Assembly (NCBI RefSeq): GCF_964204645.1
Contig: NC_134033.1
Span: forward strand, 8,192,655-8,256,654
Direction: 5' to 3'
DNA from: Tubulanus polymorphus
Taxonomy: Eukaryota; Animalia; Nemertea
Length of the DNA stretch: 64,000 nt
Shown here: positions 9,846 to 58,632 of the stretch, piece by piece
How positions within the stretch are numbered: the stretch's first letter is position 1
Layout of the letters: each line of letters starts with the position of its first letter
Notes under the pieces: model-generated
Told to the model about the DNA's origin: nothing
Databases searched by the model: none
The model's input: the letters and a program-made list of their open reading frames with translations, nothing else
Program-made: the position numbers and the translations under genes

Positions 9846-10010
9846 ACTGGACAGTACAACGACCCGGATGGTTTCCATAGCGATATGATACTGGTGCGAG
9901 ATAATTGTCATTTGTACAATCCAGAAATTTCGAAAGTTCGGCAGGATTGTGAACAGGTTTTCCAATATTATTTCATCGAGTATAAACGCATGATCGACCA
10001 ACTGCCGCAG
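9846..10010 (+). CDS. Bromodomain exon: alphaB and alphaC, TGQYNDPDGFHSDMILVRDNCHLYNPEISKV...QLPQ
   Basis: tttgcag| acceptor and |gtaggt donor, phase 0/0. F..D..L...NC..YN motif including the acetyl-lysine-anchoring Asn. Confidence 0.93.
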
Positions 10011-10346
10011 GTAGGTCTTGTAAATGTATATTTTACCCAAAAAATTACAAATATAATAGGCAAATATAACTACAAAGCAGCGATTACGGTTTTTCTGTAA
10101 AAGTGGTAGTAGGCTAAGCTAATACAAATGCTTTACAACGGGCCGAAAGGGATGAACCCTCACAAAATCTTAATAAACAATTTCCGGGTTTAAAAACCTG
10201 GAATTTCAATAAATTGAGTCATAGATTTATTTGGGTAGATGTGCAGCACCCAAATACAACAATAGGTAGGAAGATTTACTCTATACCTGCGTCAATGGTG
10301 CCGACTTGTAAACCAAGTGAAATTTGTTTGAAATGCATCCAAATGA

Positions 10347-11415: not shown

Positions 11416-11553
11416 AAATGATGATAATTCCTGTTTTTCCAACTGTGATGTATGTAGCTTTCGGTAATTAGTTTGACTGAATAAATTCACTTCCGTTTTG
11501 AGTACAATATATGGCATTGTAGTTCATTGATAATCGGTCAGGAAACGTCACAT

Positions 11554-11565
11554 TGGCGACGAGGA
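11554..11565 (+). promoter_or_regulatory. Primer-binding site complementary to the 3' end of tRNA-Ser(GCU)
   Basis: TGGCGACGAGGA, 1 nt after the 5' LTR, is the reverse complement of the metazoan tRNA-Ser(GCU) end ...UCCUCGUCGCCA. Confidence 0.85.
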
Positions 11566-11601
11566 AAACTTAATATCGTTCTCCATCCGAGTGTAGAAGG
11601 A

Positions 11602-16952: not shown

Positions 16953-17188
16953 ATGTGGTTTTATTATGTCAGTTTTTCTTTTATTACACTTACAAGATGT
17001 TAATATGGAGCTTATGCATTTTAAGATAATGCTTAGTTTTTTTTAACTGGTGTGGAGGAGTGTGATGTATGTAGCTTTCGGTAATTAGTTTGACTGAATA
17101 AATTCACTTCCGCTTTGAGTACAATATATGGCGTTGTAGTTCATTGATAATCGGTCAGGAAACGTCACACCAACTACGCTTTTCACTT

Positions 17189-17230
17189 CCACCTGATCAT
17201 GGCTGTTAGTCAACAGCCAAAACGTTGTGG
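17189..17230 (+). ncRNA. Degenerate minimal type I hammerhead ribozyme (relic of a Penelope-like repeat)
   Basis: ccac-CTGATCA-t-ggctgtt(agtc)aacagcc-AAAA-cgt-t-gtgg followed by AATAAA. Stems are intact, but two core positions deviate from CUGANGA and GAAA. Confidence 0.6.
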
Positions 17231-17939
17231 TTTCGTTTTAATAAATTATTATTTTATATAGAATTCGAATTGTGGGACTTCTTTGATTATCTACAGTGTA
17301 CACGGATTAAAGTGTTTCAGTCGATTACTACGTTTTTCTGTTTAAGTTTAAATGACTTATCCAGATCGATTATGTTATTTCATTTTCATGTCGGGTAGAG
17401 TTTGCAGGATCGAACGATCGCTCCATTCTAGTCAGTATCAGTATTTTCTTTGATACATTCAAAGAATTCTAATCGTTGTTTTCAGATTGCTATCACTTAA
17501 CATTATTCAATGCGCTTAGTAGCCATTAGTAAATGGAGCTGATTTCACTTTCCTTGATTGGATATTCTTGGAGCAATCCTCTTTGACTGACACAGAGACC
17601 AATCTCAAGGTCGTTGGGTAAAATTATGAATTTAGGGATTATAAATCAACGAATGGCATATCCTTTATCTAGTTCGGTGTCTGAGATTCGGAGATTAATT
17701 CGACAAATACATTTAAAAAAATTCTAGCCCACTTCACGCTATATATAATGCTAATCACATTGATTAGAGTGTTTATTACTGATTAGTAGTCGATTCTGAG
17801 AGAGGATACATTTTTTGTTGAAAATAAAGTGGATAAATAATAATCACGACAATTACAATAGGGTTTTCTGTGAAACAACAGAAAACCCTAATAACCAGTT
17901 TTCGGTTTATTTTATCTCCTTTACGGTGATTTGAATTTC

Positions 17940-18304
17940 GACAGTCAACGTCATTACCAATTCATAACTTTCGTATGATGAAATGAGCCTCTAAGGAAAC
18001 ATGTAAATTGCATTAGAATATTAAAAATTGTGGATTAAATGCATTTTATGTAGGCATACTGTTTTCCTGGTTTAACCGGGCATGTCAGACCTTCAAACCA
18101 AGTGACCGAGAAGCAGCCGCTGTTCACATGACAGTCAGCCTTATTACCAATTCATAACTTTCGTTTGATGAAATGAGTCTCTAAAGAAACATGTAAAATG
18201 CATTAGAATATCAAAAATGTGGATTAAATGCATTTTATGTGGGTATACTGTTTTCCTGGTTAAACAATTGGCATGTCAGACCTTTATACCAAGTGATCGA
18301 GAAG
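17940..18304 (+). repeat. Local tandem duplication, two copies with a period of about 190 bp
   Basis: gacagtca..ttaccaattcataactttcg...gcatgtcagacc...gagaag at 17940-18113 and 18130-18304. Confidence 0.8.
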
Positions 18305-18345
18305 TAAATTTTACCTTTGAAATCTTTCTTTTTTTCTGTTTACAG

Positions 18346-18360
18346 GGCTCAAATTCATAA
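18346..18360 (+). CDS. Candidate terminal coding exon of the bromodomain gene (GSNS*)
   Basis: Strong polypyrimidine tract followed by tacag|, phase 0, stop TAA, and AATAAA at 18585. An alternative candidate is ttttcag|ATTGCTATCACTTAA at 17486. Confidence 0.35.
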   Translation, partial: GSNS

Positions 18361-18890
18361 TCATCGGCATTTGTTACACGAGAACAGGCAGCTACATGTA
18401 TAATATCTCCTATTCATCGAGTGTGTAACAGCGCTGGGCCCTATCAGTACAAAACTGTGGCAATGGATTGCCAGACTATGTTTGGGATGAAGTTAGTAGT
18501 TGCTCGGTCATATACATTTTTATTTCTCTAGATGTTCACCTTGAATTAAATCAAATGAATTTTTCTCCAAGCAAATGAAAAATCAATAAAAACAATACCT
18601 CACACTGCATGGAGAAAATTCGAAGTTATCTTGGAGGCTTATACTGAATGATAATGTTTAGATTCAAGAGCCTAAAAATCATGTTCAAAGTTTATGGAAA
18701 ATTAACTAAATTTTATTAAGGAAGTGACCGATGCTATTTCTGCTATCTGGAGGTTTGTGCTGGCGATACCCAGTGTTGTATGAACAAGAACCTTGTGCAA
18801 TAATAGATTCGTTGATAAGATCAACGCTTCATGCTCATAAAGATGTAATCTTAAACAGTGTAAATACAGAGCAAACTGCAGCATTTAGCA

Positions 18891-20571
18891 CGGTGTTGTC
18901 ATATCGCGGAAAGACGGAATCGCGGAATTTTCCAAAAACGCGGAATTTCTTCATTTTTACTTTAAATAGTAAACGGGTTTTCCCACGGGGATACCCACTG
19001 TCGGACAGGGCAGCGGACCGATCGATGCAACGAGTTAGGTTCGAATCCCATTATTTGCAGGCAATTTTATATGGAATAATTATATTACGATACCGTTGAC
19101 AGGGCCAACTTCGGTTTTCGTAGCTAGTCGACTAGTGGTCGGAACTAATAACCGAACACACTATAGTTCAGTCGTAATGTATTTCACAGTGTCGGCCATC
19201 TTGAACCTAGGTCCGAACTGTAACGACCGTGCTCAATTGCGTGGTCAACCATTTCCGGACCATAGTTCCGACTAACGGACATTCGGTTTCATGTAGTTCG
19301 ACTATAGTCGACTAACTCCGATAACCGAAGTTGGCCCAGGCTGCCACCTGTAGAAGAAGTCAGAATCAAGTGGGGTGAAAGAGACCAGGCACCTAATGTC
19401 TATTTCTACTAGGCAAACTTCGGTTATCGAAGTTCATCGACTTTTTGAGACCTTCAGAAACGAATATTATCAGATGAATATTAAGCACGTTCGCGGTGTC
19501 GGACCGTAGTTGTAGATGGTTGCAAACATGAAATCCTACGACCAAACAAGTACCGGTTCAAATTCCTTTGAAATTATTATAATTTTACAGCCGTCCAGTA
19601 CCGGTACCAATAAGATTCTTTTGATCCAAATAATCAGCATAGGAACATATATGTTATAGCAGTCACAAAGTAAACATTAAAAAAAAACGAAACCATTTTA
19701 TAATCTTTCATTTCATTTAATTCTAAAAGATAAACCACATTCGCTTATAACAACAATGTAGACACACAACAAGCATGAACAATCCTAAGCCAGAATTAAA
19801 TATACATAATGTCTATTTATTTTCGTCTGACATCGATCCAGTTCCACAGTTGTGAGTTAACTCTGAGTTACTTAGAATCAATTCATTTCCAATGTTTTAA
19901 ATCCAGAGACCAGAGTCAAATCTTAACTCGGAACTGAGTCCTGGAGAATGACCCATGGTGTCATCACAAATCCTACGTTTACGTACCATCGATTTGTATT
20001 CCTTCAGTTAATGCAGCGATACTCTGTATCACTGAATTCGCAAAGCACGTATTGCCTAGGTTCTCCATTATTTGGAACAGTATCATTAAGTTGTTGACTG
20101 TTGACTGTATCGTATACTGTATGCTGCGGTTAACCTCTCATCCTCGCCTGACCGTCTCTCCCGCCGAAGCTCATTCATTGATTCGGCTAGGTCGTCGGAC
20201 CCTGGCAAGCGAGGATGAGGCAATTGTATTGTATGTATACCCTACCGGTCTCTTCTTGTGCTCTTTTTTTGTTTGTTTGTTTTTTGTATTACACTTTCTA
20301 TATTTTTGTACTGTGTATTGCTTTATTGTACTTCTGCTACCGATGATGTTATGTAACATTAAGGACCAATAAAGTTATTGAATTGAATTGAATTGGCGAT
20401 ATAATAAATTATCAAATACTAATTCCCGGTGTTGAAAACCTGGGTCCGGTGCCCTGTCCGACAGTGGGTATCCCCGTGGGAAAACCCGTTTACTATTTAA
20501 AGTAAAAATGAAGAAATTCCGCATTTTTGGAAAATTCCGCGATTCTGTCTTTCCGCGATATGACAACACCG
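18891..20571. mobile_element. MULE-like non-autonomous element with long TIRs and nested cargo
   Basis: TIRs of about 130 bp starting CGGTGTTGTCATATCGCGG. Perfect 9-bp TSD CATTTAGCA. A related copy lies at 45274-46116. Confidence 0.8.
19103..19336. mobile_element. PIF/Harbinger-like MITE nested in the MULE-like element
   Basis: TIRs GGCCAACTTCGGTT / AACCGAAGTTGGCC with a 3-bp TSD CAG. Confidence 0.65.
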
Positions 20572-27204: not shown

Positions 27205-30200
27205 AAACTAGGGGTCCAGGGGCACCATGCCCACTTGGGAAGTGGTTTCAAATGCTCAACAATCTAACAATTTCAATATTCAACGCCCCCTGGAGACCAT
27301 ATTAAAGAACCAACGACCTTGAAACTCACCAGACTCATAGAATATGTCAGCAGCTACGATTTTGTAATCGATTGTGATAACAAAATACGCCTCGTTACCA
27401 ATTTAATATGGAAATACCAAGTTATTCTACTACTCAACGCCCCCTGGTGACCATATGACCAATGACCTTGAAACTCATCACAATCATAGAACATGTCATG
27501 TCACTACAACTTTGCAATTGATCAAGGTAACAAAATATGCCTAGGTACCAATCTAATAAGGAAATACTAAGTTGTTCTACTATTCAATGCGCTCTGATGA
27601 CCATATAGAATAACTAATGTCCTTAAAACTCACCATAATCATAGACGATGTCATGAGCTACAACTTTGCGATTGATTGTGGTAACAAAATATGCATAGGT
27701 ACAAATAAACTTATAAAAAAATAAGTTTTTGTATTATTCAATGCCCCTGGTGGCAATATACAAAAATCAATGACCTTGAAATTCACCAAAATCTTAGAAC
27801 ACGATATGAGCTACATGTACAACTTTCCAATTGATTGTGGTAACACAATATGCTCAGGTATCAATATAATGTGGAAAAACTTTTTCCCACCTACAAATAA
27901 GTACTGATGACACCAAGATGGCCGCCAATTGGGCCTTAATTGGCTTATCAAAAATATTTGTCTCGGGTATAAAACATCCCTTTCCAAAGAATACTCATCA
28001 CAAATTGCAATGAGAAATGGCAAACCAGTAGGAAGCTACAGGACTCAGAATTCAGGCCAAAATTGTCATTATTGGGAACAAAACAAGGTCACAGAACGGC
28101 CAAATTGAGTCCGATCGAACCAATTTTTCTTATGCTGATGGGCCCTTGGGGGATTCATATACATATGAATGATCAAGGTTATTGACAAAACGTCTTTAAA
28201 ATTTCCCTCAAAAACTTAAATAAAGGACCAATGGTCCAGTGGTTTGCCAAACCATAGTGTGAAGTAAAAAATTTGTCATGTATAGGCTACTAGTGCGAAA
28301 AAAATTCATTTCATTGAAAATTGAATAAGAGAAATATATCAGTAACGACTTCATTTTGGTCAGTGATAACTTACTTTCTAACAAGAATGAAATCTTGATT
28401 GATCGAAAAATTGATTTTGGGAATTTTTGTCTCAACAAATTAATATTCATAATTCTTATACATTCATAGAATGCATATAAAACAAATAATACTATGAGTA
28501 CCCGAGTACCAGTGAGAGCCTGGGATTCATCGGAGGTTTTTCATTATCATATGCCTCAATTAGGACAGAAGCTCCCAACGCTATGCAATGCTTGCTTGCT
28601 ATGCTTGAGGCCAGTGCTGATAACTGACGAAATATAGTTTATCGACTGACATGGTTTTTAATCATTTCACGCTAGAAATGATGAATATGAACCTCTTCAA
28701 TTATGCCGCCATTTTGTTAAGCACCTGCTGATCCACCTCATTTACATATTCATGGGCGGATCCAGACCGTATTAGCCGTATTGCCCAATACGGTCTAGAA
28801 TTTTTAAGTGCCCTTCGAAATTTCACCGGAAATATTTTTGACGGCATTATTTCAGCAACCGCTAATTCCGTGTCCGGAATCCGGGCATAATTATAAAATT
28901 AATCGGTATATACTGCTGCCGAGAAAGTGAGGAGAGATAATCATATTTGTAACGCCTTTAATCATGATAAATTAAAAAGGGCACTTTCCTTTTGCAAGGG
29001 GCACTCATGCTTTAGATGAGGGCACCTTGTCCTTGCCTTTTCAGGGAGGGCTAAAGGGGCACTCGTACTTTAGAAGAGGGCACTATACGCGGAAAATGTT
29101 GAAGAAAAGGGCACTTTTTTGCCTAATTTTGAAAATTTTAGGGGCACTTTTGGTTAAGAAGATGGCACACGACATAAGGATAAATGTGAAGACGAGGCAA
29201 TTTTTGCCGATTGTTAACAATGAAGGGGCACTTGTTAGCTGTATTCTGTATAATTGTTAAGGGGCACTTTTAAAGATTATAGGGGCACTAGGCGAAGTTG
29301 GCGACAACCATTCTTTCATATGGGTTCGCCAGCTTCGTTTTTATCCGCATATGTTGAAATCTTGTCTCGAATTCGTTTATTCTGGATTGCGCTGCTAGCC
29401 TCTAGAAGCCCTCTAAAAGCCTTTAAATGGCACCATATTTTCAAAATTTTCTGGGGGTGGGCCCCCAGACCCCCCTGTAAGGCGTTCGCATTGACCTGGA
29501 TACTGGGTGTGCCCTTAGATCAGAAAGGTGCCCTTAAATTTCCTTCCAATACTGTCTACCCATCCCCCTGGATCCGCCCCTGATATTCAACGAATGCTAT
29601 GACTTCATGATGGAGTTCAAACCTGGTCAACACAAATTATATATAACCGAGATTTTGAGGGGTTTCATCTTTGAAAGCCCATAACTACCAAACAAAGCAT
29701 CGGATCTTGACGAGATAAAGTTCTTCCGACGCAAATAGCATTGAATTTTCACATGTGTTATTTTGGACAGTTGAAGATGCTGTATAAAAAAACGTGCTCA
29801 AATAAATCGATTTTTTGACACTTTTTGGTAAATTTCTCAAAAAATATGAAACCCACGGCTTTCAAATTTGCGTACCATAAAGAAAACAAATTATGAAATA
29901 TATTTTTGCTTAGTCCGTTTAATTCGCCCATTAGAAGTGAAATTACAGGCTACTGAAATTGCGTTTGAGTGTGCTAAAAATAGCTTTGAGCGTGTGTATT
30001 AAGCATACAAATGATTATCGATCGGCCAGACCGTTTACATAGTTACATAGTGTAAAAAATGCTGATTTTGGCGAACAACAATGGCTGCAAGTCGGCCATG
30101 ATTCTGACAGGGCCAGTTTTTGGGCTGAAGATGTGTCTAGGGTAGATACATGTGTAAACCCAAATATCAAGACATTAATTACATTGAAGCGTCTTCAAAA

Positions 30201-33031: not shown

Positions 33032-33286
33032 TTACGAACTTCGTAGACAAACTTGGCACCGACTGATACGCTGACGCAAACTGCCGGCTTTCAGCGTCTC
33101 GGAACGAGGTTGTTTAAACTGTGCGAACTGGTCGATCGTTGCCAGCCAAAAACTGTATGTTGTTGCATAGTAGTTACACGTTCCGCGCCCATGACATTCG
33201 ATGAACGGAGATGGTCGGAAATCTTCCAAACATGAACCTGGCGACTGCATACTCTGACCAGTGGCTGCTGAACCAGCGCCGGTGTG
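33032..33286 (-). CDS. COL4A1: Collagen IV alpha-1-like, terminal NC1 exon [23 protein letters not shown]...RCQVCLRSS*
   Basis: tttttcag| acceptor, phase 0, TAA stop. NC1 motifs [15 protein letters not shown] (alpha-1 type) and TLKAG. Confidence 0.97.
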
Positions 33287-34297: not shown

Positions 34298-35518
34298 AAC
34301 TAGGGGTCCAGGGACACCATGCCCACTTGGGAAGTGGTTTCCAATGCTCAACAATCTAAGAATTTCAATGTCCAACGCCACCTGGTGACCATATACAAAA
34401 ACCAATGACCTTGAACCTCACCACAATCATAGAACATGTCAGCAGCTATGATTTTACCAATTTAATATGGAAATACTGAAAGTATTCTACTATTCAACGC
34501 CCCCCCTGGTGACCATATTCAAAACCCAATGACCTTAAAACTCACCATAATCATAGAACATGTCATAAACTACAACTTTGCAATTGATCATGATAACAAA
34601 ATATGTCTCATTACCAATTTAATATGGAAATACTAAGTATTCTACTATTCAACGCCCCCTGGTGACCATATTCAAAACCCAATGACCTTAAAACTCACCA
34701 TAATCATAGAACATGTCATAAACTACAACTTTGCAATTGATCATGGTAACAAAATATGCCTAGGTACCAATCTAATAAGGAAATACTAAGTTATTCTACT
34801 ATTCAACGCCCCCTGGTGACCATATAGAATAAATAATGTCCTTAAAACTCACCACAATCATAGATGATGTCATGAGCAACAACTTTGCAATTAATTATGG
34901 AACCAAAATATGCTTAGGTATCAATATAATGTGGAAAAACTTTTTCCCACCTACCAATGAGTACTGATGATACCAAGATGGCCGCCAATTGCGTCACAAT
35001 CAAAAATACCTGGCTCAAGTATAAAACAACCCTTTCCAAGGAATACCCATCAAAAATTGCAATGAGAAATGGCAAACCAGTAGGAAGCTACAGGACATTT
35101 TTTGGCACTAAAAAGGTCATAGGACGGCCATCTTGAGTCCGATCGACCCAATTTTTCTTATGGTGATGGGCCCTGGGGGGATTCAAATATATATAAAAGA
35201 TCAAGGTAATTGATTTAAGCGTCTTCCTTAATTTCCCTCAAAAAGTTCAAAAAGTGTAAAAAGTACTGATTTTGACGAACAACAATGGCTGCCAGTCGGC
35301 CATCTTGAATCTGAGAGGGCCAGTTTTTGGGCTGAAGATGTGTCTAGGGTAGACACATGTATAAACCAAATATCAATACATTACCTTGAAGCATCTTCAA
35401 AACTTCCCAAAATAACTGGATTCCGTCTACGGACGGACGGACGGACGAACGAACGGACGGACGGATGAAAAGTGAACGCAATAGCCCGCTGGGACTAAAG
35501 TCCCAAGTGGGCTAAAAA
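34298..35518 (-). mobile_element. HINE-like family A, full copy in the last collagen intron
   Basis: Both termini, (GGAC)n tract and four internal units. Confidence 0.85.
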
Positions 35519-36098
35519 GCAGACGATGGGTGCAAAATGCAAACACTTCATAGCTGGGTACATGTTTTATACTTTATCAATGAAGGTTTTAGTCAAGCAC
35601 TGATCGTAGCGGGTGAGGCTTAAAACCAAAAAAAACTTAGTGAAATATATTGCGAAAATACTCTCAGAAAGCTGGATCCACATCTATTGGCAAAACCTAC
35701 TCCATCGAATCTAGATTTCTCAAAAACCAGATGAATTAATAGAAAAGCCCATCTATCAATTTCACGGCTTGTAATTATGATAATATTTCCAAGACAATTG
35801 AAAATGACCTGAGACTAACTGCTAAGTAACTGCATCTGGTGGTGGATGACTGGAATTTTGCGTGGTCACAAATGATCCCGATTGAGTAGGGTTTACGGTA
35901 CAAGCATGTTGAAATAATATAGCACTAATTGGTTTCATTTCCTGAAAGCTCAAGTGAAATAGCCATAAGCGAGACCAATGCTAATAAGCAGGATGCAAGG
36001 TCATAAGTGGTGCACGGTCATACAGCAAAGCGAAAGTCAGCATATAAATGAGAAGCCAGAGTACACAACGATAAGCATTAAACATCTTATCGTCTTAC

Positions 36099-36185
36099 CA
36101 TCATTATACTGTAACCGATCCACATTCCACGCCAGCCGTTCGGGCACCGCGGAATTTGCATAGTTTGACTATGAACAGCCATGAG
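36099..36185 (-). CDS. COL4A1: Collagen IV NC1 exon, downstream copy [29 protein letters not shown]
   Basis: tcattcgtag| acceptor and |gtaaga donor. 87 nt, phase 0/0. Homologous to human alpha1(IV) [29 protein letters not shown]. Confidence 0.92.
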
Positions 36186-36248
36186 CTACGAATGACAAGA
36201 AATGAGAAAATCGGCATTACTTTACAAGGTGAAAATATTTCAACTTAC

Positions 36249-36335
36249 CACAATTAAACTGTAACCGATCCAAAGGCTCTCCCAACCGGTTGGGCAATCG
36301 GGGATTTCCCGACTCTGACTATGTATGGCCACTAA
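36249..36335 (-). CDS. COL4A1: Collagen IV NC1 exon, upstream copy [29 protein letters not shown]
   Basis: atctttcag| acceptor and |gtaagt donor. 87 nt, phase 0/0. Encodes the same NC1 segment as the copy at 36099-36185. Confidence 0.92.
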
Positions 36336-38387
36336 CTGAAAGATTATGAACGATCAAATACATGTAGATATTTTATGTAAAACAATTTTTTAAAGCGTGC
36401 CTAGCTCATTGTTCCTTGAAAGTTCACCAGTTTTCAGAGTATCTGTCAGGGGAAGATCCAGTATATAGTGAACATCATTTTTCTTGTTCATCTTGGGACA
36501 TTTCTGGTGGAATTTTTTTTATATGGAATTATGTAGATGTGGGAAGTTAGGCAAAAGCTTTAACTTGATTTGATATTCAGTGAAATGATCAAATTACTAG
36601 GGTCTTATATCACAAATGCAGCACAGTCTTTACTTCAGATATCATCGACTTGTTATGGTAGAAGCGTAGTAGTAAGAATTGCTGACAAACTTCTTCATAG
36701 ACTAAACTCACGCCTTGCGGTCTGAAAAACCCCCTCACTCCTGTAATACACTCTCCACTGGAAGCCATTATCATTCATATGATATCAGTTTAATTGCATC
36801 TATAAATATATATAATTTTATTGATTTTCTTTATAGAGGGCATCCCCTTCATGTACAGCTCTTAGGGCTCGGAGTTGCCCCTCAAATATGTAAATTCTTA
36901 ACTTATATGTAATCAAAAATTTTAACACTATTGTCCATATTTGAGAAAATAAATTCAATTCAAAATTGTATGGGGTAGAATGTGATCTTGAACCCATATC
37001 TTTGTAGTTAGAATACCGCCATCTATGTCTCTATTTGGAGTAGTTTTGATAGTAGTCTTTCTCCTAAAATCGTAGTTTTTTTCATAGATTATGAAAAGTT
37101 GTACATTCCTCATCAGTAGAATAGTTTCTTAATAAGAAATCCTTTCCTCAAAAGTAGAGTATATTTTACATTGTGCGCTCAGATGTAATTTAGCATCAGA
37201 TAATGATGGACAATGAACGATCAATACAAGAAAAAACTAATGATAATAGAATACACATTCATGAAAAAATATTTCGTGAGTAAAAATAATTCCGCTGTGA
37301 AAAATAAATTTCCATCAAAAAATATTCGTAAGCGAAAACTATTTTCTTATGAAAATATATGCGCCAGTAAAAATAATTCCGCTATGAAAAATAAATTGCC
37401 TTCCTTCAAAATATATTCCGATGACTAAAATATTTTTGCAGTGTAAGAAATAAGTGTGAGGTTTCCGCTAGTGCATGCGTATATTATTTCATCTATGCTA
37501 CTAGCCCTAAGTATAGTATCGTAATACACACTGCGTGCATAACATACTTGAACTACACAGGGCATACCGCATGGCTCTCATTTACACATGAATCAGGGTA
37601 CTTGGGTAGAGCTTTGGTTTTCATCTGAAAACGTTGTGACGAATCCTTGTGACCTAACGTTAGGAAGGGTGGAATGCTGTCATTGGGTCCATGTGAACAC
37701 AAATAGGGCCAAAAATATCAAATATTTTGTACAGTCACAATCAAAATTAGGGCTCTTGATTTTGATTCCTCCGGTCCATCTAGAAATAACTATTTTTGGT
37801 CAATGCAATGAAAATTACAATTTTTGGAACTAAAATTTGTATTTCCGAGTAGTACTTACCCTTTCCTATGGTTTTTGCCAATATTTTCTAAATTTGGATT
37901 TATCGCCAATGGTTTTTCTATACGACCCGGCCCTGCGGTATTGCATTTAGCCACCGGCGAAATCCGCCATCTTTTTTCGTCATAGCAGACCAAAAAACAG
38001 CTATGCGGGGCAGGTGGGCGGGATTCCCACCATAGGAAAGGGTAAGTACTACTCGGAAATACAAATTTTAGTTCCAAAAATTGTAATATTTCCATCGAGT
38101 ACTGTACCCTTTCCTATGGTTTTTGCTAGACTAGCCTAGCACAAGGATGGTGGGAAAGGTAGATAGAAAAACCACCGCTCAAACGCAAGGTAAGAGGGAA
38201 AAAGAGAGCACTTACCCAAGCACGGAATGGAGCACTGTAGCACAGGGAAGACCGGTTGGCCACAGTGAGTCCGTCCAGCTCAGGGGCCCCCCCCCCAGAA
38301 TTTTGCGAAATTAATACTTGCAGATATGAGCCCAAACTATGTACAAGGATACACCCCCTGTGATCCTGATAATGCTACATAAATATT

Positions 38388-41336
38388 CTACACTAAAGGG
38401 TCCGATCGGAAAGAACGGACACCTTGAGCCATGACAACAGGACCAAGTGAAGCTAATGAGCCTAACTGGCCTGAAACATCCCGTAAATAAAATGACGTGA
38501 ATGTCGACGGTGAATTCCAAAAGGCGGCCCGACAGACTTCCTCCAACGGAGCACCCGAAAAGGCTGCGCAGGAAGTAGCCATAGACCTCACTTGATGAGA
38601 AACGACTCCCTCCGAGGAAAGATTCTCCTTCAATAAAATGTCCTTGATCATTGAAGAGACCCATCGGGCTACTGTGTCCCGCGAAATATCACCCTTTAGG
38701 TGATCCAGCAGCGGAATAAATAACCGCTCCCGTGAACCCCTCCGTGAAGCAGAGCGATCTAAATAGAAACACAACGCCCGCACAGGACATAAAGTCCTGT
38801 CCGGGATGCCCGGTTCCACTCGATGTTTTAGGGCTTCAATTCGCCATTGACGCCCAACCGAGCCTGGTCGTTGGTTCTTTGCCAAAAATTCCAAAGCAGG
38901 CCGCAGCGAAACAAATTCATTCGCTGGCCCAAAGACAATGTGACCTTGTCGGACTGAAAGCGCATGAATCTCAGAGCGACGGGCCGAGCAAGCCAAGAAC
39001 AGCAAAAATACAGTCTTTTATGACAAATTCGCAAAAGACGCTGCCGAAAGAGGTTCAAATGGAGCCTCCATTAACTTCTTCAAAATTACAGACAGATCCC
39101 ATGGTGGAACTGTCCTTGTTACCCGAGGCCGGGAAATGGAAAACCCAGCAACCAGCTGGGATATCCGATGATCCCCTGCTACATTTGGCCATCCAGAAGC
39201 ACGCAATGTATGAGAAATCGCGGAGCGGTAACCTTTAATAGTTATGACCTGTAAACCTTTTGCTACAAATAGGTGCAGTAAAAAATCTGCCAATTGAGCT
39301 ACAGAGGGTGAGCATGGATCAATTTCCCCTGCAGCACACCAATCCGCAAAATGACTCCATTTGGCATCGTAAATGGTACTTGTTGATGGCCGCTTAGATC
39401 CTGCGATAAAGGAGGCAGCCTGTTCTGAAAAGCCTGAAGCTGACAAGGATCGCTGGACAATGGCCAGGCGAGCAGATTTAACCACTGGCTGTTTGGATGA
39501 TGCCGAAAGATCCCCTGAGACAGAAGCGATGGGAAATCCGGAAGAATCCTGGGGTTGTCGCACAGTAGGTTGAGAAGTGGTAGGAACCATTTCTGAGCCG
39601 GCCAACATGGTGCTACCAGAACTATGTTGCAATTGACTGATCTCTCTATTTGATCCAGTAAGCGCGGCAGGACTGGTGTGGGCGGGAACGCATACGCATG
39701 CATCCCCGACCAGTCCAGAGAGAAGGCATCGACCCCCCACGCTTCCGCGTCTGGAAACGGGGACACAAACAGAGGACACCTCCGATTGAACCGGGTGGCA
39801 AACAGATCCAGCAGCGGATTGCCAAAAATGCCCCGAACCCGATCGGCTACTTCTTGGTGGAGAACCCATTCTGTCGCAATAGCCTGACCTCGACGAGACA
39901 GAGCATCGGCCATCACGTTCCTTTTCCCTGCTAAATGTGCCACAGTCAGGGACACGCCCTTTGTCTGGCACCAAAGAAGAATTTTGGCCGACAGACCTGT
40001 GCGGGTTTCTGAGTGAGTGCCCCCTTGGTTCTGAAGGTAAGCCCTCACTGTTGAATTGTTTGTGGCTAACCAAACGTGGTGGCCCTCCACTCTCCTGTGA
40101 AAGAACTTCAGGGCCTTCCACACGGCCAGCATTTCTAGGAAATTTATGTGGTTGGTGGCCTCGTAGCGAGACCATTTCCCGGCTTTGACTCGGTTCTCCA
40201 GATGTGCCCCCCAACCTTGGTGACTGGCATCCGTGAAAACACGAACTGGAGCCTCTAACGGGGCTAGTGACACCCCGAGCCGAAGATTCGTAGTGGCCGC
40301 CCACCACTGAAGATCCGGACTTAGATCGGTTGGAGGTACGGGAATCAAGGCCTCCCAGTTGCCCTTCGACTGAGACCAGACCACCTTCCAATATTGTTGC
40401 AAACGCCTGCTTCTGAGGCGGCCTAAGGGCACCACCAGACCCATGGAGCTGATGGAGCCTAGAAGCCGTGACCAGTAACGAGCTGTTCTCGGGGTTGTGG
40501 ACACTCCCGCTACAGCTTCTTGAAGTTTGGCCACTCGAACCATAGACGGAAAGACTTTGCCGATTCGGAGATCGAAGTCCATGCCGAGATAAGTGAACTG
40601 TTGGGCCGGCGTCAACTGAGATTTTTCCCTGTTTACGCGGAACCCTAGCTGATGGACTAAGTCCAAGACTGAGGTCATTGCCTCCCGACATTCCTGAGCC
40701 GAATTCGCGACTATTAACCAGTCGTCGAGGTAAACGAACAGTCGAACACCCCTTGACTGAAGTACCTTCTGAACTGACTTGACCAACTTGGTGAAAACCC
40801 ACGGGGCCGTACTGAGGCCAAATGGAAGAGACCTGAATTGGAACTGGCGGCCTTTCCACTTTATCCTGAGAAATCGCCGAGATTTTGGGTGAATTGGAAC
40901 CTGAAAGTAAGCATCTTTCAGGTCCAATGAAGCCGCCCATTGACCCGGACGGAGCCCTTGAATCACGTCCTTGGGCTTGGTCATCCGGAACCTTGGAATG
41001 TCTAGGTGCCGATTGAGGGATGACAGATCTATCACTGTCCGTTGACCCCCTGTGGCCTTTGGTACCATGAATATTCGAGAAAACCAGCCGGGAGAAGTTT
41101 CGTTGCAAACTGGTTCTATCGCTCCCTTCTCTGCCAGTTCCTTGAGAGCCGGAGAGATTAAGGCCTCCTGACCTGGTTTTGGCCGCATGTCGGGAGGTGA
41201 CCTCATCAGGCGCGGTCGCCTTAGGAAACGGAGACGGTAGCCCCGAGAGACGACCCGGGAGGGCCAACCGTCTCCAAAGAGGTCGGACCAGTGGGTTGCT
41301 GCCTGCTGCAGACAACCTCCCACTGGTCCCAAGAAT
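38388..41336 (-). pseudogene. DIRS ORF3: tyrosine recombinase with long N-terminal overlap on ORF2; one in-frame TAA at 39018-39020
   Basis: ARRSEI (R), AKNQ (K), HQVR (HxxR), W and FTSFY (Y). The pieces 41315-39018 and 39005-38388 are in the same frame. Confidence 0.9.
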
Positions 41337-41348
41337 TCATTTCGAGTT
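39299..41348 (-). CDS. DIRS ORF2: reverse transcriptase, RNase H and Dam-like methyltransferase domain (start approximate)
   Basis: PVGG, LDLKDAYF, LPFG, YLDD; TDAS, HINFLE, ADALSR; DLFA..N, VDAF..W, YAFPP, P.WP..WF. The RNase H TDN motif reads TNN. Confidence 0.9.
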
Positions 41349-43571
41349 TTTCCGAAAGGAAGAGCCCCTTTTTGGAGCCTTCCCCTTGCCTCGATACGAA
41401 CCGGAACTGTTACGACCGGACGAGGCTTGACACGATTGTTGAAGTTGCGCGCTAGTTCTCCAACCGGCATCCGAAGCCGCCTGAGAAAGCGCTGAAGTTT
41501 GAGATGGTCCTGTTTGCGTCCGTGCCGAACCTTGCGCCGCCGGCGTCGGACCAGAACGCTTTTTCCACGGAGTTCGGGGGTTGGACTTGGCCTGAACCTC
41601 CCGAATCTTCCTCAGCTCTGCGGACACCGGAGCGCACCAACCGGAGAAGAGACGTGAAGACGTCCCCAATGGGGCTCTCAGCAAAGCATTGGACACCATA
41701 TCCGGTAGACGAGTTTTGGCACTGGAGTCCATCACTGACTGACGGGAGGCTCACACCAGATTAGCCTGACCCCGAACCGACAACGGAATTACATGCGAAA
41801 CAGACCGAGCCAAAGATTGGATAATCCGGTCCATTCCCTCCAGTTTTAGGGCAACTGACTCTGGGTCGGAGCCCGCATGAACGGCGGCGTGAGTCTCGCG
41901 AAGCTCACCCGTCAACACCTTAAGTGCCATATCTTGAAACGAACCAACCCTGGTAAGATTGTCCAGGATTGACGTCATGGCCACCAAACCGGACTTAGGC
42001 AAACGAATACCCGACTGTGCTGTAACAGTATCCGGGCTGATCAAAGTATAATCAGCATCCAGGCAGTTATGACTGTGATCCACGACACCTGGAGTTGCGT
42101 AATACGCCGAGCGAAATGCGCCTATAGGTGGATCGGTTGAACTAAAATATTTCCCAGATTTCATACCCCGTTCTGGAGGGGGAAATGAAAAAGTTCCAGG
42201 CCGACATTCACCCCATAATTGCGTATCCAATCGAGCCCATTCTCTTGAAACCGCTGACGATTCCCGTAAAACGTTAAGATCGGAGTCCGGAGGGCGATAA
42301 GCTTCCATTGACTCACCGACCAGAGGAGCTGCTGTGGGCTTAGCGCGAGTTGCCCCATGCTTGACAAAGAACTCACTTATCATCGCTCTAAATGGCATGT
42401 CCCCCGCTGGTTCGGATAAAACTGAACGGGACGGAGATACATTGCGAGCCAGGGAAGCCCCCATCGTCTGGGGCAACCCACAATTGCTTGCGACAGGAAC
42501 GACCCCAGAAGGAATTGCCGCCTCTGGGACCGGATCCTCATTGAAATCAGACCCTACCGCAGCATCCAGGAATTCAGAGTCAGAATTCCGAAAAACTGAG
42601 TGGGCTGGCGAACTTCTAACCGGACAATCAGGAATAGGCTTACCTGTTGTAGAAGTTGCAGCGACTTGTTGCGACGAAGATAACAAGTTTAAAATTTTCT
42701 CCTCAAATACATGGAAATCCTTCTGAGTCAGGTATTTTCCAGTATCCCGACGATCATGCCGACTTCGGTGACGGTCCCTCGAACGGGATCGCGACCTACT
42801 AGAAGAATCGCTTTCATCGCTAACCAACGTCGACGAACGATGAGAAGACCGACGGCGAAACTTCCGACAATAACGATCGTAGTCCCTCTCGCGATCAAAC
42901 CTTGATCTGCGAGAAGGAGATCTTGCTCGTTTATTACGCTCACGGCGTCTAAATCTAGTGGGAGAGCGAGCTCTATCCCCGGAGCGACGATCAGAATCAG
43001 ACGATGAACGTACCGGATGTTTTGAACCAGACGACGTCTGGACCGGACCGGTGGCCGAACCGGACCGATGCCCGACCCGGACCGGTACCGACCGAACCGG
43101 TGCGGGCCGTTCGCGACTACCGCGGCGCGCGCTCGGTTCCGAACATGTAGTCTGAACCGGCCAAACCGGCCGAACCGGTGAACGACCAGAGACCGGTGAA
43201 TGACCGGAGACCGGTGCCGGTGAACCAGCGTTCCTCCCCGGTGAACGGAGTTGGGAAGCCGATCGTACCTGAATGACCGGCGACCGCTCCGCTTTACGAT
43301 AAGAAACAGGATTAGAAACGTCGGTTGGCACATCGGCCGAAACCGACGAATCCCTGCTAACTCGACGACGATCTCTTAGTTTAAGAGCCTTATCGGCCCG
43401 AAGCCAAAGGTCCTCGGACCACACGACGCAAATATTGCAAGGATTGCTCCTTGCACATATTTGACCGGATTTGCGCCTGCACGACGCACATGAATCGTGG
43501 TTGTCCCAGGCGCCAAACAAATGCCCGCATCCTTCCCCACCACGATGATGACCCTTAGGAGGGGGTGGCAT
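41337..43571 (-). pseudogene. DIRS ORF1 (Gag-like), one in-frame TGA at 41751-41753
   Basis: ATG at 43571. N-terminal Cys/His cluster (DNHDSCASC..C..PCNICVVW) and an Arg/Ser-rich tract. The frame continues past the TGA to a stop at 41337. Confidence 0.85.
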
Positions 43572-44576
43572 AATTATCCTGTTACAAATCAAAACAATTC
43601 AATTCAATTCAATCAAATTATATTTGTAAATAAAATTCTTACGGAAAAAAAGAAATCAGGGATAACCCCCAAACCGAACGGACTCACCGTTACGAGAGTG
43701 AAAACTCCCTAATATTCTAATTCCCAGATTTTTACGGCGAAAAAATCCAACGCGTTCTACTGCGAGAACGCCAAGAAAAAAGATGGCGGATTTCGCCGGT
43801 GGCTAAATGCAATACCGCAGGGCCGGGTCGTATAGAAAAACCATTGGCGATAAATCCAAATTTAGAAAATATTGGCAAAAACCATAGGAAAGGGTACAGT
43901 ACTCGATGGAAATAGTAATTATTGCAGATCAATAAAAAGTGGATACAAGTAAATAATGGATACAAGTTGCTGTAGCCGTAGGATCAAAAACTAAGACATC
44001 TTTTACTTGATGTCCCGTTCAACACACTACAAACACACTACATACAACGCGTGAAAATGGAATAATGGATATTTTTAGACATAGGGAAATAATTCTGATG
44101 GAAATATTTTTCGATGGAAATTTATTTTTCATGACAAAATTATTTTTTTGACAATAATTTGGAAATATTTCCATGGCCCTTATCAGCCACCATAGTATTG
44201 TGCTAACAAGAGAATTCAAGATTACTGCCCTGGCAATCGTGAAACAAGATATTTCTTTTTATCAAATGTGCGCCCCCTTTTTGAATTGGCGAGATCTGTC
44301 TCTGGGGATTGCTTTCGAGCTGTGACCCTTTGACAATGCTGGAGAGAACTTTTGGAGAATGAGATTCATTAGGATGACGTGTTTCCTGATCGGCTAGTAG
44401 TGTGGAAAAACTCTGCTTCATACTCATTACTGATAGATAGATTTTGAACAACAGCTAAGTAAGTACATGGTACAAACAGACAAGGTAGCCATATGAATGA
44501 TAGTGGCAAAATCAACCCTTGGTCACCCTTATCAATTCAAAATTGATGTTCAGTAGATATGTATTATCCCAAATAC

Positions 44577-44782
44577 CTGAGCAGGTGCTTCACATACGGA
44601 GCATCGACTGATGTATCGTTTGATTCCTCCATCTTTAATCGGGTTCATCATCGGAGTCATTGGCTCCGGGGTTGATAACCAATAACTATAGTCTGTTCTC
44701 GATGCCGTGTAGCAGACATTATTAACATTACAGAACATGTACGGCATTGTACTGAAACGCTGTAAACAACTGCCATGAGATC
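44577..44782 (-). CDS. COL4A1: Collagen IV NC1 exon (G)[17 protein letters not shown]...CEAPAQ
   Basis: tttttcag| acceptor and |gtattt donor, phase 1 to 0. [16 protein letters not shown] has the alpha-1-type DYSYW motif. Confidence 0.96.
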
Positions 44783-45273: not shown

Positions 45274-46116
45274 CGGTGTTGTCATATCGTGGAATCACGG
45301 AATCGTGGAATTTTCCAAAAATACGGAATGTCTTTATATTCATGAGATGTTCAAATACTAACTGGGTTTTCCAAAGGGATATCCTTTGTCGGACAAGGCG
45401 CCGACGCACATGGAGAAGCAACTATATAACAGCTTTCTCTTCACAAATAACGGAGTTAATAAAACAAACCATTTCATAATCTTAAATATCATTCAACTTT
45501 AATTAGATTTTCTAGACACACTACACTCGCTTCAATCACAATTTAGATGCATGAAACGCATGAAAAATCCTAAGCCAGAATATGCATTGTGTCAATTCAT
45601 TTTTTGTCTGACATAGATTATTTCGGCATATTTCTGTTGATCGTTTGAATACATACCTCAGTTTGGTCTTTTTATGACCAGCGAAACCGTGCGGTCTAAA
45701 TAAATCATTGTTTTTATATCCATTTTACAATGCAGCATTAGTTGGACTAAATGAAGGCTTATCAGTGGAAAAATATGCAGAACTCGTAGATGCGGTTGCG
45801 GTCTCACCCGATGTACTGCCTCCGGTACAGGCCAGATACCCCAGTCACTGTGGGGTCAGCAGTTAATGTTGATAGATTAATTGCCTAGGTTCTCCATTTT
45901 GTCATTGAGAAGTGTCGTTAATTGGTTGAGTGAAGATAATAATAAATTATTACATAGGCCTACCGGGTGCCGGTAATGAAAAAATGCATCCGGCGCCTTG
46001 TCCAACAAAGGGCATCACTATGGAAAAACCCAGTTACTATTTATAATGAAAATGAAGAAATTCTGTGTTTTTATGAAAATTCCGTGATTCCCTGATTCTG
46101 CGATATGACAACACCG
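45274..46116. mobile_element. Second, shorter copy of the CGGTGTTGTCATATCG TIR element
   Basis: Same TIRs as 18891-20571. Shared internal motifs aatcctaagccagaat and ttgcctaggttctccatt. TSD degraded. Confidence 0.75.
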
Positions 46117-46167: not shown

Positions 46168-46280
46168 CCAAGTCTTGACCATGAGGACGTCCGTTGCCTT
46201 GGAAGAACAATAATGAATAGCCATCCCATAGTTTGTTAGTTCCGACAGGACATTCAGGTATATCAACTGTCTGGCTATGC
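46168..46280 (-). CDS. COL4A1: Collagen IV NC1 exon (R)[37 protein letters not shown](G)
   Basis: gtctactag| acceptor and |gtaagt donor, phase 2 to 1. Not in the ORF track because it is too short. Confidence 0.95.
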
Positions 46281-48684: not shown

Positions 48685-48892
48685 CTTGTGAAAAAGAATC
48701 CATGATCTCCTCCTACTGGACCTGGTAATCCAGGATTTCCAATCAAGCCAGGAGTACCTTCATAACCTCGAGTTCCTCCACTACCTTTAGGACCTCGGGA
48801 ACCTCCAACACCTGGCAGACCTTCGGGACCTTGAGGCCCGACATATCCTTGGGGTCCATTTGTACCGGGTTCACCTTTAGGTCCATCAAAAC
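48685..48892 (-). CDS. COL4A1: Collagen IV junction exon: last Gly-X-Y repeats and start of NC1 ([10 protein letters not shown])
   Basis: ctgtag| acceptor and |gtaaca donor, phase 1 to 2. Confidence 0.95.
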
Positions 48893-50758: not shown

Positions 50759-51996
50759 AACTAGGGGTCGAGGGACACCATGCCCACTTGGGAAGTGGTT
50801 CCAAATGCTCAACAATCTAACAATTTCAATATTCAACGCCCCCTGGTGACCATATACAAAAACCAATGACCTTGAAACTGACCACAATCATAGAACATGT
50901 CAGCAGCTACGATTTTGTAATTGATTGTGATAACAAAATATGCCTCGTTACCAATCTAATATGTAAATAATAAGTTATTCTAGTATTCAACGCCCCCTGG
51001 TGACCATATTCAAAACCAAATGACCTTGAAACTCACCACAATCATAGAACATGTCGCGAACTATAACTTTGTAATTGATCATGGTAACAAAATATGCCTA
51101 GGTACCAATATAATAAGGAAATACTAACTTATTCTACTATTCAACGCCCCCTGGTGACCATATAGAATAACTAATGGCCTTAAAACTTGCCACAATCATA
51201 GACGATGTCATGAGCTACAACTTTGCAATTGATTGTGGTTACAAAATATGCCTTGATACGAATAAAATATAGAAATACTAAGATATTGTATTATTCAACG
51301 CCCCCTGGTGGCCATATACAAAAACTAATGACCTTGAAACTCACCACAATCATAGAACACGCTATGAGCTAAAAGTTACTAATTGATTGTGGTAACAAAA
51401 TACACTTAGGTATCAATATAATGTGGAAAAACTTTTTCCCACCTACGAATGTGTACTGATGACACCAAGATGGCCGCCAATTGCGTCATAATTGGCGGAC
51501 CAAAAATACCTGTCTCAGGTATGAAACATCTCGCTGCAAAGAATACCCATCACAAATTGCAATGAGAAATGGCAAACAGGTAGGGAGCTACAGGACTCAG
51601 AATTCAGGCCAAAATTGACATTTTTGGGCACTAAAAAAGGTCATAGGACGGTCATCTTCAGTCCGATCGACCCAATTTTTGTTATGCTGATGGGCCCTGG
51701 GGGGATTCACATACATCCGAAAGATCAAGGTAATTGATCAAAGCATCTTCAAAATTTCCCTCAAAAAGTTAAAAAATGTGTAAAAAGTGTTGACTTTGGC
51801 GAACAACAATGGCTGCCAGTCGGCCATCTTGATTCTGACAGGGCCAGTTTTTTGGCTGAAGATGTGTCTAGGGTAGATACATGTGTAACCCAAATATCAA
51901 GACATTACATTGAAGCGTCTTCAAAATTTCCCAAAATAACTGGATTCCGTCTATGGACGGACGACGGACAAAAAGTGAACGCAATAGCCCTAAAAA
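50759..51996 (-). mobile_element. HINE-like family A, four units spaced exactly 154 bp, terminal hairpin deleted
   Basis: attcaacgccccctgg at 50831, 50985, 51139 and 51293. End reads atagccc|taaaaa. Confidence 0.85.
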
Positions 51997-54706: not shown

Positions 54707-54971
54707 CTGGCAATCCAGGCTTTCCACGTCGGCCTGACACACCAAGGTAACCTTTGATACCCTTCTCGCCCTTTGGTAACGTGATATCCTCAGGAGGTAA
54801 TCCGGGGAGACCCGGCTCTCCTTGTACACCTTTATCTCCAATTGCACCCTTCATAGTAAGACCTGGTAAACCTGGTTCTCCACGTGGCCCACGTTGACCT
54901 TTAGAACCAGAGCTTGCTCTACCTTGTGATTCACCCTTCATTCCTTTCAAGCCGTCTTGACCATTCATTCC
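54707..54971 (-). CDS. COL4A1: Collagen IV triple-helix exon with interruptions (GMNGQDG...GKPGLP)
   Basis: tttaag| acceptor and |gtaatt donor, phase 0 to 1. Gly-X-Y repeats. Confidence 0.92.
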
Positions 54972-55321
54972 CTTAAATCAAGTTACAATGAGCAATCAAG
55001 TTTACAAGTTTGTGAAATGATGGATAATTGGATACGGATAACTCTTGACAATGAGGAATCACTGTCTCCCATTGCCGCAGATGAGCAATTTTTCCGTTTG
55101 ACATCGAGCCAATCGGGCAGTTGCTCGCGAATTGCTTGAAAACATTTGCCGTGTGGGCTAGGCTTAAGTTTGACTTGAAGAGTTAAAATAAGTTCCGATG
55201 TTTCTAACTCAAGAATCAAATTTTTAAAGAGAACTATGGAACTTGGTCCAGAATTAAACCATTATGAAAGTTGGTGAACAAAAGGTTTAATACAGATGTC
55301 CCGCATTTAAAGAAAACTTAC

Positions 55322-55455
55322 TGGAACTCCGAGAACTCCCATTTCTCCTTTATCACCAGGGCGTCCTTGTAGACCACGAAGGCCTTGATCTCCTTTCATT
55401 CCTTTCGGACCCCGGAGTCCTGGATAACCTTTCTCACCCATTAAACCATCAAGAC
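55322..55455 (-). CDS. COL4A1: Collagen IV triple-helix exon (GLDGLMG...GVLGVP)
   Basis: tttctgtag| acceptor and |gtaagt donor, phase 1 to 0. Confidence 0.93.
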
Positions 55456-55779
55456 CTACAGAAAACACCCATCTCACAATATCATTTGGTGACCACAAAC
55501 CACAAATTCTTCAGGTGAGAGTTCAACAGAATATGGCAAATTCTCTCACAAATTCTACATATTGTCAATTATACCTACCATATTTTCTGGTGTATAAGTT
55601 TTTGAGACCAAAAATCGTGTCCCAAAAATGTAGGTCGACTTATACACTGGCTACACTTTTGATATTGTTTTAAACTGACGATGTTTATTAGAGTTCAAGG
55701 TCGCCATGATGAAATGGAATATCAATTTATGTTAGGCTACATATACCAGTTACAAAGAATTTAGGATTTTGGTAAAATA

Positions 55780-56164
55780 AGCTGCGTTCACACTAGGATT
55801 TCAGTACGGTACTAAGCGCTCACCCTAGGAAATTATTTGAGGTCTATTCGCGGCTTATCAATCGAATTCCGTGCCGAAAACCCGATCTCAGTACAGCACT
55901 GATCTGGCTGCGTATTTTCTGTAGTGTGAATGCAGATTCGGCGCTTAGCTAGCCGCGTATTCAGATTCTCGTAGTACAAAACACTCAGCACTAATTACAC
56001 TCCCTCTATTGGCACACTGGGTGACTACTATACTGGGTTTACTAAGTGCCGAATCGCGACTCGTAGTGTGAACATAAATAACTGCATAAGCGCCGTATTT
56101 TGGTGAATTCAGCACCAGCGAAGTATGGTACTTCGTAAGCGCCGAATCTAGTGTGAACGCGGCT
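55780..56164. mobile_element. PIF/Harbinger-like MITE, second copy (degenerate relative at about 23487-23996)
   Basis: TIRs AGCTGCGTTCACACTAG / CTAGTGTGAACGCGGCT with TSD ATA. Interior similar to 54042-54465. Confidence 0.8.
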
Positions 56165-57379
56165 ATAGTTTCTTATACTTTGGGAATGTTTCAAAATTAA
56201 CTCATGTTAAAAATCAAAAGAGAAAGAAAGTGTATTCATTATACAGTATTTATATAAGCCGCGCTGTGGAAGTGTGCCAATAATCAATACACAGCAATCA
56301 TACTAAAGTCTATTTTTGTCTGACATCAATTTTTTGGGGATATTTCTCTGAAAAACTATGGTTCGTAGACATAGAAACACAGGAAGCATATTGTTTGAAT
56401 TTCAAAAATGGTTGATCTTTTCTTACTAAGGACCAAATTGAGGTATGTGATCAAAATATTAAGCGAAATATCCCAAAATGATTGATGTCAGATGAAAATA
56501 AATAGACATTAGACACTATGACACATGGATACAAATAATGAGCACTAATCCAGTAATTTGATATTAGAAACAACAGATTCCAATGATTAATTGCAAATCG
56601 TGGTAAAGACTCTCACCGTTTTCTAAGTGACTAATGTACACACACGAAGAAGCGACTAGACATATACACCCACTATAGCAAGTACAATTTTTTGAACTGA
56701 AAATTTGACCTTGACTTTTACACTGGGTTGACTTGTACAACCGAAAATATGGTATGTCTCCCGGCAAAAAGTAGACAGTAGCGATCTTGAATCTCTTATT
56801 AGCACCCTGCTGATATGGACAATGATCAATGACACAGTTTTATCTCATACCCATCCAACTGAAGTTTTGAAATGTTCCCTTTGGATTTGCAGGCTCCAGT
56901 TCACCATCAAGAAATTCAAGATGGCTTCCACTTACAATAGGTGTAGACATCTTCCCAACTCATGCAAAAAATTTCAAGAAAATTGGATTGAGATTTGCTT
57001 GCAGCCCATGGTGTGAAAATTCTAGATGACTACTATTTCATATACGGTACATATATACATTTAAAATTTGAGGCTGTATTGCGCTACCAAGTCGTAGGAG
57101 AGGGCACACACTGAAACAAAATGCTTCTACCCCCACCCCATCCCAATTTGACTCAGAAGTCAAAATAATCAAAAATGAACAAATTTTGATTCTTGGGAGA
57201 AACGCTGCAACCTTGTTCGTCAGACCTGGGTTATCTGGATCTGGAACGCTGACAGTGACGGGTAGGCAGGTGGCTATAATTTGATCTTTGAGTTGAAATA
57301 TTGAAAATAAACTAAATTTGAATTATGAAACTGTTTTCTGATCTCTAGATTTCATATTGTCCTCCACTGTGAATATTAC

Positions 57380-57589
57380 CCCAGATTCCCTTGTCTTTTT
57401 TACCTTGAATTCCGTCTGCGCCTGGATCGCCTTTACTTCCTTTTTCTCCGATTCGCGCCCATCCAGGGTCACCAGGGACTCCTTTCAAACCATTACGTCC
57501 ATTAATGCCCGGAGTACCTGGTTGTCCTTTCAATCCAGGCATACCAGGCATGCCATTCTGACCAGATTCGCCATGCACACCTTTTGGAC
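57380..57589 (-). CDS. COL4A1: Collagen IV triple-helix exon (GPKGVHG...); 3' end at 57380 or 57404
   Basis: ttcatag| acceptor, phase 1. Two in-phase donors: |gtaaaa after 57404 and |gtaata after 57380. Confidence 0.88.
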
Positions 57590-57777
57590 CTATGAATGTA
57601 GTTATATATATGACAGTTATGTGGTCAATCAATTTCATTTGTTTTCGAATTTGTCATCTTAGTTATAGGGTTCTGCAATGACAGGTTGTCACTTGAAGGG
57701 TTATCTTTGAATGGAAGGGCTACCATAAATATCAGATTGGTTGGGACCAACATTGCTGTATTTAGATGAAAACAAAC

Positions 57778-58138
57778 CTGATCCCAAAGATAATCCTGGT
57801 AGTCCAGACAATCCTTTGACTCCTTTTGTGCCTTTCGGGCCATCGATGCCAGGTTCTCCATCTTTACCAGAGAGTCCTACATCACCAACATCGCCTTTTC
57901 CACCATCTATACCAGGTAAACCAGGTACACCTTGTTCTCCGGGTAAACCATCCAAACCATTGTGTCCACGCAGGCCGCGGTCACCGATTGTGCCTTTAGG
58001 ACCGACTTCACCGTCCAGTCCGCGCAATCCATCATTGCCTTTTTCACCTCGTTTGCCTTTTAAACCCGGACTGCCCCGACGACCAGGTAATGGTGGCCGG
58101 CCTTGACGACCTTTTAATCCTCGAGGCCCTGATTCACC
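57778..58138 (-). CDS. COL4A1: Collagen IV triple-helix exon (GESGPRG...GLSLGS)
   Basis: ttttaaag| acceptor and |gtttgt donor, phase 0 to 1. Confidence 0.9.
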
Positions 58139-58498
58139 CTTTAAAAAGACAATTATTCAAAATCATATATACACTTAAGCCAAAACCTTTCAAATACCGG
58201 CGCATACAACTGTTCGAGATACTTATACAGGTAACAATCTTCTGTTCGCACCCACTACTACTCTGATATTCATCACAATTGACCTGACTTAAAAGGACTA
58301 TTTTAATTGATATGAACTAACTTGAGGCATCAGAAATGTCATCTGTTATTTCAAGCACATTTTCAAAAAATAATTGAAACAAACTTGACACATAGCATGA
58401 AATATGACACTAGTATAGTAAAGTCTGAAGGGGTGGTTCCATCTTACAGATCAATACCTGGATAAATCATGAACATAAATTAATTAAAAGTTTCTTAC

Positions 58499-58632
58499 CA
58501 CTTCTCCCTTTGGCCCAAAAGGCCCTCTTGTTCCAACTGACCCCTGCATTCCTTTGAGACCGGGTAGACCATGTATTCCATCGACTCCTACAGGCCCAGG
58601 ATTGCCAGCCATTCCCTTCCCACCATCAACAC
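58499..58632 (-). CDS. COL4A1: Collagen IV triple-helix exon (GVDGGKG...GPKGEV); upstream exons lie beyond the window
   Basis: attatag| acceptor and |gtaaga donor, phase 1 to 0. Confidence 0.92.

Follow-up and report, generated by a model that had tools for sequence, protein, structure and literature searches.

The minus strand of the window (i.e., the whole 64,000-nt stretch of Tubulanus polymorphus DNA analysed here) carries the 3′ part of a collagen IV gene in which an 87-nt exon of the NC1 domain occurs twice in tandem. We consider it quite probable that the two copies (hereafter A and B) are a mutually exclusive pair that arose by a lineage-restricted duplication, with B as the main and A as the minor form, and that they are kept apart mainly by a short intron and swap a surface loop of NC1. 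The proposed origin would be a tandem duplication of an ancient exon in an alpha1-like collagen IV gene, and the parts of the gene that bear on it are the following, together with a repeat family dispersed over the window:

54707..58632, minus strand: five Gly-X-Y exons of the same collagen IV gene (boundaries approximate)
48685..48892, minus strand: exon with the triple-helix end and the NC1 start, 208 nt
46168..46280, minus strand: constant NC1 exon with the start of subdomain 1, 113 nt
44577..44782, minus strand: constant upstream NC1 exon, 206 nt, ending in phase 0
36249..36335, minus strand: exon A, 87 nt, phase 0/0, NC1 residues 117-145 (alpha1 numbering), net charge -2
36186..36248, minus strand: A-B intron, 63 nt, with in-frame stops and candidate branch-point adenines at positions 46 (best motif), 19, 27 and 32
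36099..36185, minus strand: exon B, 87 nt, phase 0/0, net charge +2, spliced on either side to the flanking exon in run X4 (contig 15)
33032..33286, minus strand: constant terminal coding exon, running to the stop codon, alpha1/alpha5-like
3824-5118, 27205-28224, 34454-35518, 50759-51969, 58820-60041, 61216-62240 and 63002-63650: copies of the dispersed repeat

The Gly-X-Y exons run from 58632 to 48685 and are followed by NC1 exons encoding two C4 subdomains, i.e., the architecture of a collagen IV alpha chain, and the gene probably continues past the edge of the window. Exon searches were made one exon at a time and, scored against solved structures, the terminal exon obtained 170 and 162 bits to alpha5 and alpha1, respectively (vs. 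129 bits to alpha2), and the upstream NC1 exon 133 and 128 bits (vs. 114 bits). Moreover, a tree of the terminal exon (only 84 columns) placed the chain outside the alpha2-like clade with a support of 99/99. Judged by these comparisons, the NC1 domain is nearer to alpha1/3/5 than to alpha2/4/6, and the chain is classed as alpha1-like.

The window also contains several mobile elements. A DIRS1-like retroelement occupies 37857-43896 in the intron upstream of A, with minus-strand ORFs at 43598-41754, 41611-39302 and 41336-38391, 122-nt terminal inverted repeats that are 100% complementary and an internal complementary region near 38029-38126. Reverse transcriptase and RNase H were recognised by Pfam, an overlapping ORF ends in a tyrosine-recombinase-like part with one stop near 39020, and the element looks young. 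On the plus strand, 11952-15299 holds a Ty3/gypsy-like gag-pol spread over three ORFs (zinc knuckle, protease, reverse transcriptase, RNase H and integrase), for which no long terminal repeats were found by self-comparison of 9000-19000. The dispersed repeat is about 1.0-1.2 kb long, with an internal array of a 154-bp unit and copies that are 80-94% alike; the copy at 34454-35518 terminates near a 4-nt microsatellite, a feature reminiscent of non-autonomous Helitron-like elements. Finally, inverted-repeat pairs typical of small DNA transposons lie at 15277-16551 and 45274-46116 (about 400 nt at 90%, and nested arms of 40-48 nt).

On recheck, the two 87-nt, phase 0/0 exons proposed from the sequence alone proved correct in their coordinates, translations and splice sites. 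Both copies are free of stops, have CAG or TAG acceptors and GTAAG donors, and match the Pfam C4 profile alike (profile positions 2-30, E about 1e-11), while the A donor is a full GTAAGT consensus and the A acceptor is pyrimidine-rich to the same degree as that of the terminal exon. Since the 63-nt spacer contains in-frame stops, it is an intron and not read-through. A and B share 16/29 amino acids and 58/87 nucleotides (67%), with matches at 18, 24 and 16 of the 29 first, second and third codon positions, respectively, and the introns flanking them can be aligned over no more than 6-9 nt. No third copy of the exon was found in the window, where the sole extra match was the subdomain-1 homologue at 46279. 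Homology, similar length and a common reading frame, by which mutually exclusive exons are recognised (PMC5740500), are all present in this pair.

Sequencing runs were available as assembled contigs and were placed on 35600-36900, a span chosen because the intron on the terminal-exon side holds a long tandem repeat and the upstream exon lies more than 6 kb off. None of the runs is on record as RNA, and their type was judged from their behaviour. Run X2 (DNA-type) spans the two exons in one contig with 0 differences and may be the source of the assembly. In one contig of run X1 (DNA-type, another sample), the last 22 nt of A are followed by the spacer and B, and differences from the window are confined to intron DNA. 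A merger of two haplotypes into an artefactual tandem pair is already refuted by this recurrence of the arrangement in two DNA-type runs from different samples and, moreover, sits badly with copies that are only 67% identical between unalignable flanks, so that we give it practically no credence.

Splice joints were read from loose contig ends. In run X4, a single 1219-nt contig (depth 16.3) covers exon B only, with 0 mismatches, and at its loose ends it continues into sequence found once each in the window, at 33257-33286 and 44579-44608; the two ambiguous bases at the joint are a shared AG. These ends point to a real transcript in which the upstream exon is joined to B, and B to the terminal exon, with A skipped. 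Because B stands alone between the flanking exons, constant inclusion of both copies, an outcome that the sequence-only reading had named as speaking against exclusivity, is ruled out in the X4 sample, and B is the main form in the single sample seen. A junction joining B across A, also among the features of mutually exclusive exons (PMC5740500), is thus found in one X4 contig. The proposal that one gene makes two NC1 isoforms thereby stands for the isoform with B, and for the other half neither an A-containing spliced contig nor an A-to-B joint was seen among the contigs of X4, the sole RNA-type run; contigs drop rare variants. Run X5 (guessed to be RNA, from another study) had no contig over 35600-36900. 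At 87 nt, an alternative exon may be collapsed by an assembler, and the absence of A from one contig set says little about its use, as it is expected for a minor short alternative. With B spliced alone, mutual exclusivity is half demonstrated and, overall, probable, in which case A would be a minor alternative limited to certain tissues or stages.

The sequence of A itself carries a record of use. Between A and B, dS is about 1.15, dN about 0.33 and dN/dS about 0.29, over only 29 codons. At 11 near-invariant codons, 0/22 first- and second-position differences were found, vs. 16/36 elsewhere (Fisher p = 1.4e-4), and a simulated neutral copy stayed intact (in frame, splice sites and near-invariant residues) in fractions of 0.20, 0.04 and 0.002 at 0.05, 0.1 and 0.2 substitutions/site, respectively. 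The near-invariant codons and the simulation together indicate that A was under purifying selection for most of its history, which bears out, over that span, the earlier suggestion of an old duplication with both copies under such selection. Moreover, the conserved Phe143 is missing from both A and B, and both start with a rare Leu; these common traits suggest that the duplication postdates changes specific to the lineage.

A rival reading is a recent loss of use, i.e., A as a formerly functional alternative that has lately been abandoned and has begun to decay, leaving the gene with a single NC1 product. Of the two copies, A deviates more from the family (its profile score lies at the 2nd percentile, vs. 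the 13th for B), with a Val at residue 145, where 96% of homologues have Met145, and a further deviation at Arg125. Its transcript was not seen in the X4 contigs, the young DIRS-like retroelement with its identical terminal repeats lies 1.5 kb upstream of it, and a neutral copy would still be intact 20% of the time at 0.05 substitutions/site. Nevertheless, after a dS >1, A retains its frame, its two splice sites and 11/11 near-invariant residues, B is likewise off the family at Phe143, and a minor short alternative is expected to be missing from a contig set, and we consider such a decay unlikely. Far less likely still is that A serves as a cassette exon, at times included with B as an in-frame insertion of 29 residues. 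Joint inclusion keeps the frame, and introns of about 60 nt are spliced in many invertebrates, which counts against steric exclusion by the 63-nt intron, itself perhaps spliceable here. However, no A-to-B joint was found, the assembled form has B alone, the plausible branch points all lie <50 nt from the donor, and, as judged from a homologue model, the NC1 fold would have no place for a second β1′-β3′ core with its extra cysteine.

How, then, could the inclusion of A together with B be prevented in a mutually exclusive pair? Since A plus B (87+87 nt) stays in frame, nonsense-mediated decay is unable to enforce exclusivity. RNA-pairing (docker/selector) elements around the exons were not significant (z-scores -0.6 to +1.0), and inverted repeats within 35500-37250 were only short and at chance level; RNA secondary structure was rejected as the enforcing mechanism for want of significant pairing around the exons. 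The 63-nt intron is the shortest that the collagen IV gene has in the window, followed by one of about 190 nt, and its plausible branch-point adenines, predicted at positions 19-46, are all <50 nt from the A donor. This spacing suggests steric exclusion, given a threshold of about 50 nt from donor to branch point that was measured in vertebrates and may not be this animal's (PMC5740500, PMC7969005). On that vertebrate threshold, a donor-to-branch-point distance of at most about 46 nt would be the main obstacle to the joint inclusion of A and B.

A set of 15 loci that extend over both flanking exons, among them Candidula, Pomacea and Ruditapes, have the 87-nt exon once and with the same boundaries, and encode 11 distinct exon peptides; a Saccoglossus homologue is without the 5′ intron. 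On this comparison of loci, the exon with its two boundaries is judged ancient. Metagenome contigs provided 80 loci, 45 of which cover both flanks, and a tandem second copy was present in none; there is much near-redundancy among these loci, and one annelid group is probably the source of many of them (a guess from sample names and sequences). Since each of the 89 other loci, genomic and metagenomic, has the exon only once, and no relative with a duplicated exon occurs among the loci examined, the duplication looks lineage-restricted with respect to a set that includes no known nemertean. No isoform pair stood out among the homologous proteins fetched; apparent pairs (fragments, fish and crustacean-like, whose short flanks were nearly identical) dissolved once longer flanks were compared. 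Protein searches for full-length annotated relatives, nemerteans included, returned fragments and partial models, none recognisably nemertean, and the few mammalian-type fragments entered the column-frequency profile only. Between species, the swapped segment is the most variable part.

Some further observations were made in these loci. The homologous 87-nt exon has a GC donor in several related loci (L005:4390, L046, L059 and L081). In a Ruditapes locus, two stretches similar to the start of subdomain 1 (L008:11152 and 13158) lie 2 kb from each other and 5′ of the single-copy exon; they may reflect exon duplication or an additional C4 repeat. A Cyprideis torosa model (P0156, 977 aa) combines a collagen IV NC1 with ankyrin repeats and a kinase domain, and is probably a fused gene prediction.

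By alignment, the 87-nt exon corresponds to human alpha1 NC1 residues 117-145, and in a homologue model (P0384) of high local confidence a strand is followed by a loop of 12 residues and a long strand. The exon takes in strand β1′, the exposed EB loop and β2′/β3′. Exon residues 9-23 align to alpha3 127-141, the EB region, which is a surface-exposed, mobile loop at the apex of the hexamer (PMC8093946). A and B differ at 13 residues, 7 of which, with every charge change, lie in the EB loop, making it acidic in A (net -2) and basic in B (net +2), and three conservative changes lie at the end of β3′, in the sheet that docks the hairpin of the neighbouring chain. The motifs SM1, SM2, SM1′, SM2′ and SM3′ and the chloride loops are described as key for protomer closure and hexamer contacts (PMC6211539), and the exon stops at alpha2 residue 143, just short of SM1′ (144-154, alpha2 numbering). 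It contains neither the swap hairpin, SM1′-SM3′, nor the chloride and cross-link motifs, and only β3′ of the docking sheet. The upstream exon (44577..44782) carries the β6-β7 swap hairpin and the chloride loop (positions in part from PMC6211539), and the terminal exon (33032..33286) carries SM1′, SM2′ and SM3′. As for the sulfilimine cross-link, the equivalent of Met93 lies in the upstream exon and that of Lys211 in the terminal exon. The fold, the cysteine and all known assembly motifs are common to both protein forms.

Since the assembly motifs lie in the constant exons, the exchange of A for B, which turns the EB loop from acidic to basic, would most likely alter the binding of the NC1 hexamer surface to matrix partners or receptors, and not chain choice. 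The suggestion that this splicing provides the network diversity for which vertebrates use paralogous chains finds no support in this placement of the described assembly and cross-link motifs. A related reading, in which both exons are tissue- or stage-specific and the EB charge together with the three changes at the β3′ end makes alpha1-like chains that differ in partner preference or ligand binding, appears to us quite improbable; if true, alternative splicing within NC1 would let a single gene form two distinct collagen IV networks.

A duplicated NC1 exon in collagen IV is thus real and apparently undescribed: no earlier description of an exon pair in NC1, or of nemertean collagen IV, was found in the literature searched, which left subscription papers mostly uncovered and gave let-2 as the sole collagen IV case. 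Few regions of collagen IV are as conserved as NC1, the domain by which the basement-membrane network is linked, and no report was found in which exchange of an exon diversifies a full-length NC1. Were A in use, the EB loop, known chiefly as the epitope of autoantibodies, would exist in two versions of opposite charge on an otherwise identical chain, a natural experiment on this loop. The reach of the finding is limited, in that the duplication looks lineage-restricted and the animal is not a laboratory model.

Comparable arrangements are known from other genes. In C. elegans let-2 (alpha2(IV)), exons 9 and 10 are mutually exclusive, with >90% exon 9 in embryos and 80-90% exon 10 later (PMC2119826). 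The present pair resembles it in having duplicated similar exons in a collagen IV gene; one-at-a-time use and a developmental switch are let-2's. In contrast, what the let-2 pair exchanges is an interruption of 9-10 residues in the triple helix of an alpha2-type chain, whereas A and B lie in an alpha1-like NC1. Tandem exons kept exclusive by a short donor-to-branch-point distance are known from OGDH 4a/4b (PMC7969005) and from 57 human clusters (PMC5740500), with which A and B share equal length, the same phase, homologous sequence and a predicted distance of <50 nt. Unlike in those cases, the whole intron here is 63 nt, the branch point is predicted at an ordinary 3′ position and not a distant one, and a junction was seen for B only. 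Finally, the segment resembles the EB loop of vertebrate alpha3/alpha5(IV) (the Goodpasture hypoepitope; PMC8093946, PMC6211539, PMC5571546) in being exposed and in varying between chains and species; vertebrates, however, vary this loop between paralogous genes along with the assembly motifs, whereas here the segment alone would be swapped, by splicing.
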